Below are positions 21,281 through 22,977 of a stretch of DNA of 32,443 bases, in pieces (the stretch's first letter is position 1; every line of letters begins with the position of its first letter). The stretch is taken from sequence record BK067788.1; one strand, given 5' to 3'. The translations under genes were made by a program, and so were the position numbers. The notes under the pieces were generated by a model. The model was not told the origin of the DNA and searched no databases. It saw only the letters and a program-made list of their open reading frames with translations.

Positions 21281-22701
21281 TCAAAAACCGCCACTCTTGC
21301 GTGTTGAGAGGATAGCTATTAACACACCTATCGTTACAGCACCTGCTATAAAAGTAGGAAGTGCAATGAATCCAAAGAAGGCACAAGCTCCTATTATCGC
21401 TACGGAAAATATTACTCCTACTGTTTCGTTTACTCTATTAAACCCGATCATGGATATTATTATGATACCAATGGTAACAAAATCTAATATGCCTATCTGT
21501 CCATGAGTTCCATATGTTCCGTTTCTAAGATTCTGAACCTGTTGCTGGAATGGAAACGTACTTTGAGTCAATACATATTTTGCATTAGAACCTGTCAAGG
21601 AATCTGTACAAAGAACATTGACTATCTCGTTATTGAGGTTATGAAACTTGAAAGAACTGTTTGAATTTGATATATCAAAAGGAACTGAAGGCAATGGCGG
21701 TCCATATGTATTATTTGTCATGGCAAATGTATAATTCATGTTACATTCCATGCTCATGATATTTGGATATATTACTGAAAGCCTTGTGTCTGTTGTATTT
21801 AGATCAGTTCTTACAAAGTAAATAGGAACCACATTATTGTTTGTAAAGTTAAAGTTTAGGTTTCCTGTCACGAAACTTCCATAATCCAATACAACATGGT
21901 TTGTCGTTACAAGACTAATTCCTGTTGATGTCTGTAATATTGCCTGTTCGTAATAAGTCTGTATTCCTGTTGGCTGTGAATTATCCTGTAATGATACTGG
22001 TATGCTGGTTTGTATTCCGGCTGTTAACTGGACTGGATTGCTGGTAAGATCCTGAAACGATACTAGATTGCCGTTTGTGTTCCATAGTAACAATGCCGTA
22101 ACGTTTGCAGTTGCCGGAGTTGCTAGCTTGATACTTGGATCATTAAAGATGCCATTGTTTGCCAAGACATAACCTGTAACATTAAAGTTTGATGTAGTTA
22201 TGGTTCCACCACCCCATGATAGAAACATGTCAAGATGAGATCCTACATTTATAGTAGTACAGACCAATCCATTACAAGTTCCATAATTCCAAGTAGAACC
22301 AAATGGTTGATCTGTTCCATCTAGCTTTACCTGTTGCAACTGTCCAAGTACGGTCATGGTTACTCCACCAGTTCCCAAGTCAGTAATATGAGCAGTAAAA
22401 TTATCACCTTCATTGAACCCTGTTATGTTTGCATTTATCTGGTGTCCAGACCAAGCAAGATCATAATATGGACTACCCAAAAATATATCAGTAGAATTTG
22501 CTATAATACTTGTGACATTAAAGTTTGGTGAAACATCTGCGGTATAATTTACGTTTCCGTTTCCAATAGTGGTTCCAGGGTATACGGTTACAGCATATGC
22601 ATTTTGTGATATGAAAAGACTAACTATGATACCAGTCAGTAGAAAAAAAAAAATCTTTGCTTGTTCAACAAGGAATGTCTTATGGTATCTTTATTAAACA
22701 T
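21281..22701 (-). CDS. Large membrane-anchored virion glycoprotein (~473 aa), interrupted by a 1-nt frameshift in a T11 run
   Basis: ATG 22701 frame (MFNKDTIRHSLLNKQRFFFFY*) and downstream frame (LLTGIIVSLFISQNAYA-VTVYPG...) join into one signal peptide with 12 or 9 T; beta-rich ectodomain with sequons; C-terminal TM helices. Confidence 0.7.
22643..22653 (-). repeat. Homopolymer A11 (+) / T11 (coding strand)
   Basis: Read directly: ag-aaaaaaaaaaa-tc. Confidence 0.9.
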
Positions 22702-22707
22702 TTATGG

Positions 22708-22977
22708 CTAGTCCTGGCCCTTCACGCTCGCAGTCATAAGGACCTTTATGATCAATATGAAAAGTCCTATGGTAGGTATCAATGGAACTAGGAACTGTGT
22801 CGTACTAAGGTTTTGATTATAGATAGCCTGCCAATCAGAAGACAAGGGTGCCGTCTGGTTGTATGCTGCCAATGTAGTAAAGAAGTGGCCTAGAATACTT
22901 GGAACGATAAGAAACATTATACCATATACTATGATAAACATGATTACAGAGAATGCAAGAAAAACTAATGATGACAT
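22708..22977 (-). CDS. Putative minor capsid protein (VP3-like helical hairpin)
   Basis: Two hydrophobic helices joined by an N-x-T/S-bearing loop; LVPLIPTIGLFILII resembles helix 2 of spindle-virus capsid proteins. Confidence 0.6.
   Translation of the reverse strand: MSSLVFLAFSVIMFIIVYGIMFLIVPSILGHFFTTLAAYNQTAPLSSDWQAIYNQNLSTTQFLVPLIPTIGLFILIIKVLMTASVKGQD

Follow-up and report, generated by a model that had tools for sequence, protein, structure and literature searches.

How can a gene for a conserved surface protein be expressed if its start codon and the greater part of its coding sequence lie in different reading frames? This question is raised by a locus in the spindle-shaped virus NTM1 of Nitrosopumilaceae from rhizosphere (BK067788.1), classified by ICTV as Terrafusivirus michiganense in the family Nipumfusiviridae (PMC12451623). 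The window analyzed here (the whole stretch of 32,443 nucleotides) is identical to the GenBank record and is essentially a complete 32.5-kb viral contig with direct terminal repeats. The paper describing this virus infers ammonia-oxidizing archaea as hosts and does not mention any frameshift, signal peptide or homopolymer (PMC10866085). The initial annotation noted that a T11 tract shifts the frame of a "core structural glycoprotein" inside its signal peptide, and proposed either phase variation or programmed transcriptional or ribosomal slippage. Our analysis confirms the layout and supports the interpretation in its programmed-slippage variant, while the classical ON/OFF phase variation appears weaker.

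Anatomy of the locus

The gene is encoded on the minus strand. Its ATG start codon (22701-22699) lies 6 nt after the stop of the upstream ORF60 (22708-22977, minus strand) and opens a 0 frame of 16 codons (48 nt), of which the 15 codons after the ATG (22698-22654) specify a signal-peptide n-region with a net charge of +3. This frame runs into the T11 tract (22653-22643), which encodes four Phe residues, and after a TAC codon it is terminated by TGA (22638-22636), which would yield a 21-aa product. The remaining 17 codons of the signal peptide (22642-22592), comprising the h- and c-regions and ending with an A-x-A motif, are in the -1 frame, as is the mature protein of 436 aa (22591-21284). This downstream frame is open from 22693 to the stop codon at 21283-21281, but it has no ATG, GTG or TTG before the TTG at 22480-22478, which leaves 54 codons without a start. 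As stated in the initial annotation, one extra T (or a -1 shift) gives a pre-protein of 473 aa (16+4+453). Curiously, the GenBank annotation includes only the leaderless 399-aa ORF59, which starts from this TTG, probably not the real start. The T11 tract is the only homopolymer of 9 nt or more in the genome; A/T runs of 8 nt or more are otherwise fewer than expected from a first-order Markov model (4 observed against about 8), which fits a general avoidance of slippery runs in this genome of 66% A+T.

The predicted surface protein

Searches of Pfam and PHROGs revealed no similarity of this protein to known families. Searches for related loci among viral contigs (with the single protein and with the alignment) and among genome contigs, as well as a length-tolerant DNA pattern search among viral contigs, also found nothing, but forty homologs were identified in metagenomes. 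The family exhibits a strongly conserved cleavage region, a sequon-rich ectodomain (14 N-x-S/T sites in the reading frame after the run in NTM1) and a conserved C-terminal block of hydrophobic helices, predicted to form a multi-helix membrane anchor (about 21296-21505 in NTM1). The AlphaFold model (mean pLDDT 68) shows an N-terminal helix, an all-beta ectodomain and four C-terminal helices, while Foldseek returned only generic tandem Ig/FN3-like sandwiches with low TM-scores, which supports a surface adhesin-like protein and nothing more specific. The C-terminal anchor domain occurs in 10 deposited records of Nipumfusiviridae (one of them NTM1 itself). In the marine and freshwater relatives (BK067792, BK067790, BK067786, BK067789, BK067784, BK067782) it is fused to ectodomains of 930 to about 2900 aa, while proteins from the soil clade are compact (about 450 aa), which points to modular exchange of the outward-facing part. 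Thus, the labels "core" and "glycoprotein" proposed in the initial annotation are reasonable inferences, and the protein is a conserved, membrane-anchored surface protein, which we infer is plausibly an attachment or terminal-structure component.

In close soil and marine relatives the gene directly follows a homolog of ORF60, a small membrane protein with a conserved C-terminal motif, so the two are probably co-transcribed. In many other soil relatives the gene directly upstream encodes a different protein of about 190-200 aa, which ends in a conserved I-x-Q-G motif and lies 2-6 nt before the ATG of the recoded gene. The operon context therefore differs between sub-clades while the slippery leader is kept.

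Conservation of the run and of the frame relation

We read the DNA upstream of the homologs and classified 19 lineages of the gene family (designated below by L numbers or isolate names). Thirteen of them possess a start codon, a 7-49-nt leader and a homopolymer, and then need exactly +1 nt to enter the gene frame: NTM1 (T11), L002-L008, L010, L009, L015, L018, L022, L023 and L024 (all T10), L011 and L017 (A9), and L012 and NTT2 (BK067783; A10). Five lineages (L013, L014, L025, L042 and the marine NYM1) carry T10 or T11 in frame, one (L016) has no run, and none needs the opposite correction. Further marine genomes that we inspected by eye (NMM1, NBC1, NMH1, NMC1, plus NMP1) have ordinary run-free leaders. 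The tract is thus conserved in position, length class (9-11 nt) and frame relation across relatives down to about 40% protein identity, although the lineages are phylogenetically related and thirteen lineages do not represent thirteen independent events. In L009, L011, L012 and NTT2 a stop codon in the gene frame lies at or a few codons (in L009, eight) before the run, so no alternative start is possible. L015, however, also has an in-frame TTG that would give an acidic n-region, and L024 relies on TTG as its start. The unshifted 0-frame products in the relatives are only 6-24 aa long and are not conserved.

Interestingly, the A-runs encode the Lys cluster of the n-region, while the T-runs encode the Phe cluster that opens the h-region. 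According to a simple rule-based check (rather than a trained predictor), after a conceptual -1 shift every lineage yields a leader with a net charge of +1 to +4, a hydrophobic core of 15-20 residues and an A-x-A site, as expected for a Sec-type cleavable signal peptide. In the maximum-likelihood tree the out-of-frame state spans both major clades, across starred branches of 0.2-0.6 changes per site, and A-run and T-run forms are interspersed: L017 (A9) is sister to L018 (T10), and L011 and L012 are placed beside L015. The in-frame members with a run form one derived clade.

The start-less segment is under purifying selection. Most pairs of lineages are saturated at synonymous sites (pS above 0.5), so only the closest pair is informative: compared with L010 (99.6% identical after the run), the 54 start-less codons of NTM1 carry 6 synonymous and 0 non-synonymous differences. 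In NTT2 the start-less stretch reaches 134 codons, and it contains invariant residues of the family. NTM1 and L010, otherwise near-identical, exhibit a local divergence hot-spot at about 22621-22800 (80-85% identity against 95% or more elsewhere), which covers the 3' end of ORF60 and the leader n-region, ends at the run, and could reflect relaxed constraint, run-associated mutagenesis or a recombination patch. Within it, a change from A3 to A4 in the leader is offset by a change from T11 to T10 in the run, so the phase is preserved.

Mechanism of expression

Based on these results, we propose that this is a conserved, selected recoding site, in which full-length pre-protein is made only from the fraction of expression events where one extra nucleotide is effectively read at the run. 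In the absence of read, RNA or protein data, the molecular route, its efficiency and its purpose are inferred; we consider it somewhat more likely than not that archaeal RNA polymerase slips on the run and adds one U (or A) to the mRNA, possibly with a contribution from a -1 slip of the ribosome, which would result in a fixed low output of this protein relative to its operon neighbors. The one-directional bias is what either route predicts, but two observations favor the polymerase. All runs are 9-11 nt long, although 7 nt would suffice for a ribosomal shift, and 9 nt is the length at which productive transcriptional slippage, and selection against such runs, become evident in prokaryotic genomes (PMC1088944). 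Moreover, in the 80 nt downstream of the run in 14 lineages we found no significant or shared RNA structure (z-scores from -1.3 to +2.2); a short 8-bp hairpin that starts 2 nt after the T-run in NTM1 (22640-22617, minus strand), with similar ones in L023 and L024, is not significant against shuffled sequences and is absent from the A-run lineages. Archaeal RNA polymerase pauses and terminates in vitro at runs of five or more T, and UTP concentration modulates this effect (PMC2253867). In the T-run lineages the tract should therefore also attenuate transcription, and T10-T11 might even terminate most transcripts, but A-run lineages would lack this effect, so attenuation cannot be the conserved function.

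Purely ribosomal -1 programmed frameshifting on a faithful mRNA is an unlikely alternative that cannot be excluded. Every run contains a canonical X XXY YYZ heptamer in the 0 frame, poly-U and poly-A are the classic shifty P/A-site pairs, and the one experimentally shown archaeal case, Sulfolobus fucA1, uses an A-rich heptamer (PMC8211752). In these respects the ribosomal route fits equally well, and both routes may act, but seven nucleotides would suffice for it, the runs are always of 9-11 nt and are expected to make RNA polymerases slip regardless, and the search for a downstream stimulatory structure in 14 lineages was negative. DNA-level phase variation, in which a minority of ON genomes would supply the protein, possibly in trans within a cell, is less likely still. 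Long 5'-proximal homopolymers are the classic design of contingency loci, run length differs between lineages, and one clade (L013, L014, L025) is in frame and evidently viable, so the out-of-frame state is not obligatory. However, as far as can be judged from assembled contigs, close relatives are always in the same OFF phase: the NTM1-like strains read T11 in three independent JGI sample assemblies (with two more places reported as similar), and the 91%-identical relative reads T10 in seven. No in-frame form of the close relatives was found in a collection of 15 billion proteins, where all five members of the NTM1-like cluster are leaderless calls. The opposite OFF phase is never seen, the phase is held by compensating changes and over saturated synonymous divergence, and a virus whose majority genotype lacks a conserved structural gene would not persist without rescue at the level of expression.

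Two further possibilities are very unlikely. Homopolymers of 10-11 nt are the commonest site of sequencing indels, and an error in the consensus has been evaluated here without raw reads; nonetheless, the tract length is identical among the independent assemblies mentioned above, the out-of-frame layout recurs in JGI, ENA/MEGAHIT and Logan assemblies and also at A9 runs, which are sequenced reliably, assemblers do return in-frame T10/T11 in other lineages, and the bias is strictly one-directional (13 to 0). It is also possible that the leader is dead, and that the real product is the leaderless ORF annotated in GenBank and by all gene callers, or that the gene is a decaying pseudogene. This is contradicted by the conservation of the start-less codons at the protein level, by the need of a sequon-rich ectodomain with a C-terminal anchor for a signal peptide, and by the positions of internal starts, which in the relatives fall at different, non-homologous places from 2 to 134 codons after the run. 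A role of the T-run as a promoter for a downstream leaderless start was rejected, because there is no in-frame start within 54 codons.

Comparison with known recoding systems

Programmed slippage at homopolymers is known from IS elements, dnaX, mxiE, Ebola GP and potyvirus PIPO. In the Ebola virus GP gene, polymerase stuttering on a 7-U template run adds the nucleotide required to make a membrane glycoprotein, the unedited product is a different, truncated protein, and the device limits the glycoprotein load (PMC5009743). We regard this site as a functional analog, but there an RNA virus uses its own RdRp and the mid-gene site yields two functional proteins, whereas here a dsDNA archaeal virus presumably uses the host RNA polymerase, the site lies in a cleaved leader, and the unshifted peptide is not conserved. 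In Shigella flexneri mxiE, IS-element transposases and Thermus thermophilus dnaX, a conserved run of about 9 A or T lets non-templated insertion fuse two ORFs (PMC1088944), but these bacterial cases concern cytoplasmic regulators, transposases or replication proteins, and none of them sits in a signal peptide. Frameshifted genes of Buchnera and Blochmannia are likewise rescued by polymerase infidelity at long A/T runs (cited in PMC5009743), which is interpreted as tolerated decay in tiny AT-rich genomes; here, maintenance of the phase across deep divergence, by A/T run swaps and by compensating changes, implies selection. Bacterial contingency loci also place a homopolymer near the 5' end of a surface-protein gene, but in the viruses studied here ON and OFF genotypes are not both sampled within strains and only one OFF phase exists.

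In Archaea, the reviews that we consulted list only the -1 frameshift in fucA1 of Saccharolobus solfataricus, the tail-chaperone shifts of haloarchaeal tailed viruses and a putative Mg-chelatase case, with no programmed transcriptional slippage (PMC8211752, PMC5009743), and our literature searches found no report of a frameshifted gene in spindle-shaped archaeal viruses. Both fucA1 and the halovirus genes require a -1 shift on an A-rich slippery site. However, fucA1 encodes a cellular enzyme and combines a heptamer with a putative stem-loop, the halovirus cases are the bacteriophage-type G/GT chaperone shift, and neither uses runs of 9-11 nt or involves a secreted protein. It is possible, although we consider it slightly less likely than not, that the locus represents the first programmed transcriptional slippage described in the archaeal domain or its viruses, in which one short tract (in its U-run form also a pause site or terminator for the archaeal RNA polymerase) would both attenuate the operon and meter a virion surface protein.

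Implications for Nipumfusiviridae

The public annotation of at least two deposited genomes should be corrected: ORF59 of NTM1 (21281-22480) omits the leader and 54 further codons, and ORF64 of NTT2 (BK067783.1, 26552-27931) is annotated about 130 codons downstream of where similarity begins, because of the same kind of frameshift at A10. A frameshift placed inside a cleaved leader is invisible to proteomics of the mature protein and to gene callers, and similar cases may be systematically misannotated as leaderless ORFs in AT-rich archaeal viruses. The natural T10, T11, A9 and A10 runs also offer a simple template for testing slippage by archaeal RNA polymerase. We infer that a cleaved signal peptide is the one place where homopolymeric Lys or Phe is functionally acceptable and that length heterogeneity (for example from +4 slips) is harmless there and is removed with the leader, so that the recoding leaves no scar on the mature protein. 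Recoding is barely documented in Archaea, and the present case, which comprises many lineages of a recently defined family of viruses of ammonia-oxidizing archaea, predicts how these uncultured viruses set the dose of a probable attachment or anchor protein, which is probably needed in few copies or is harmful in excess.
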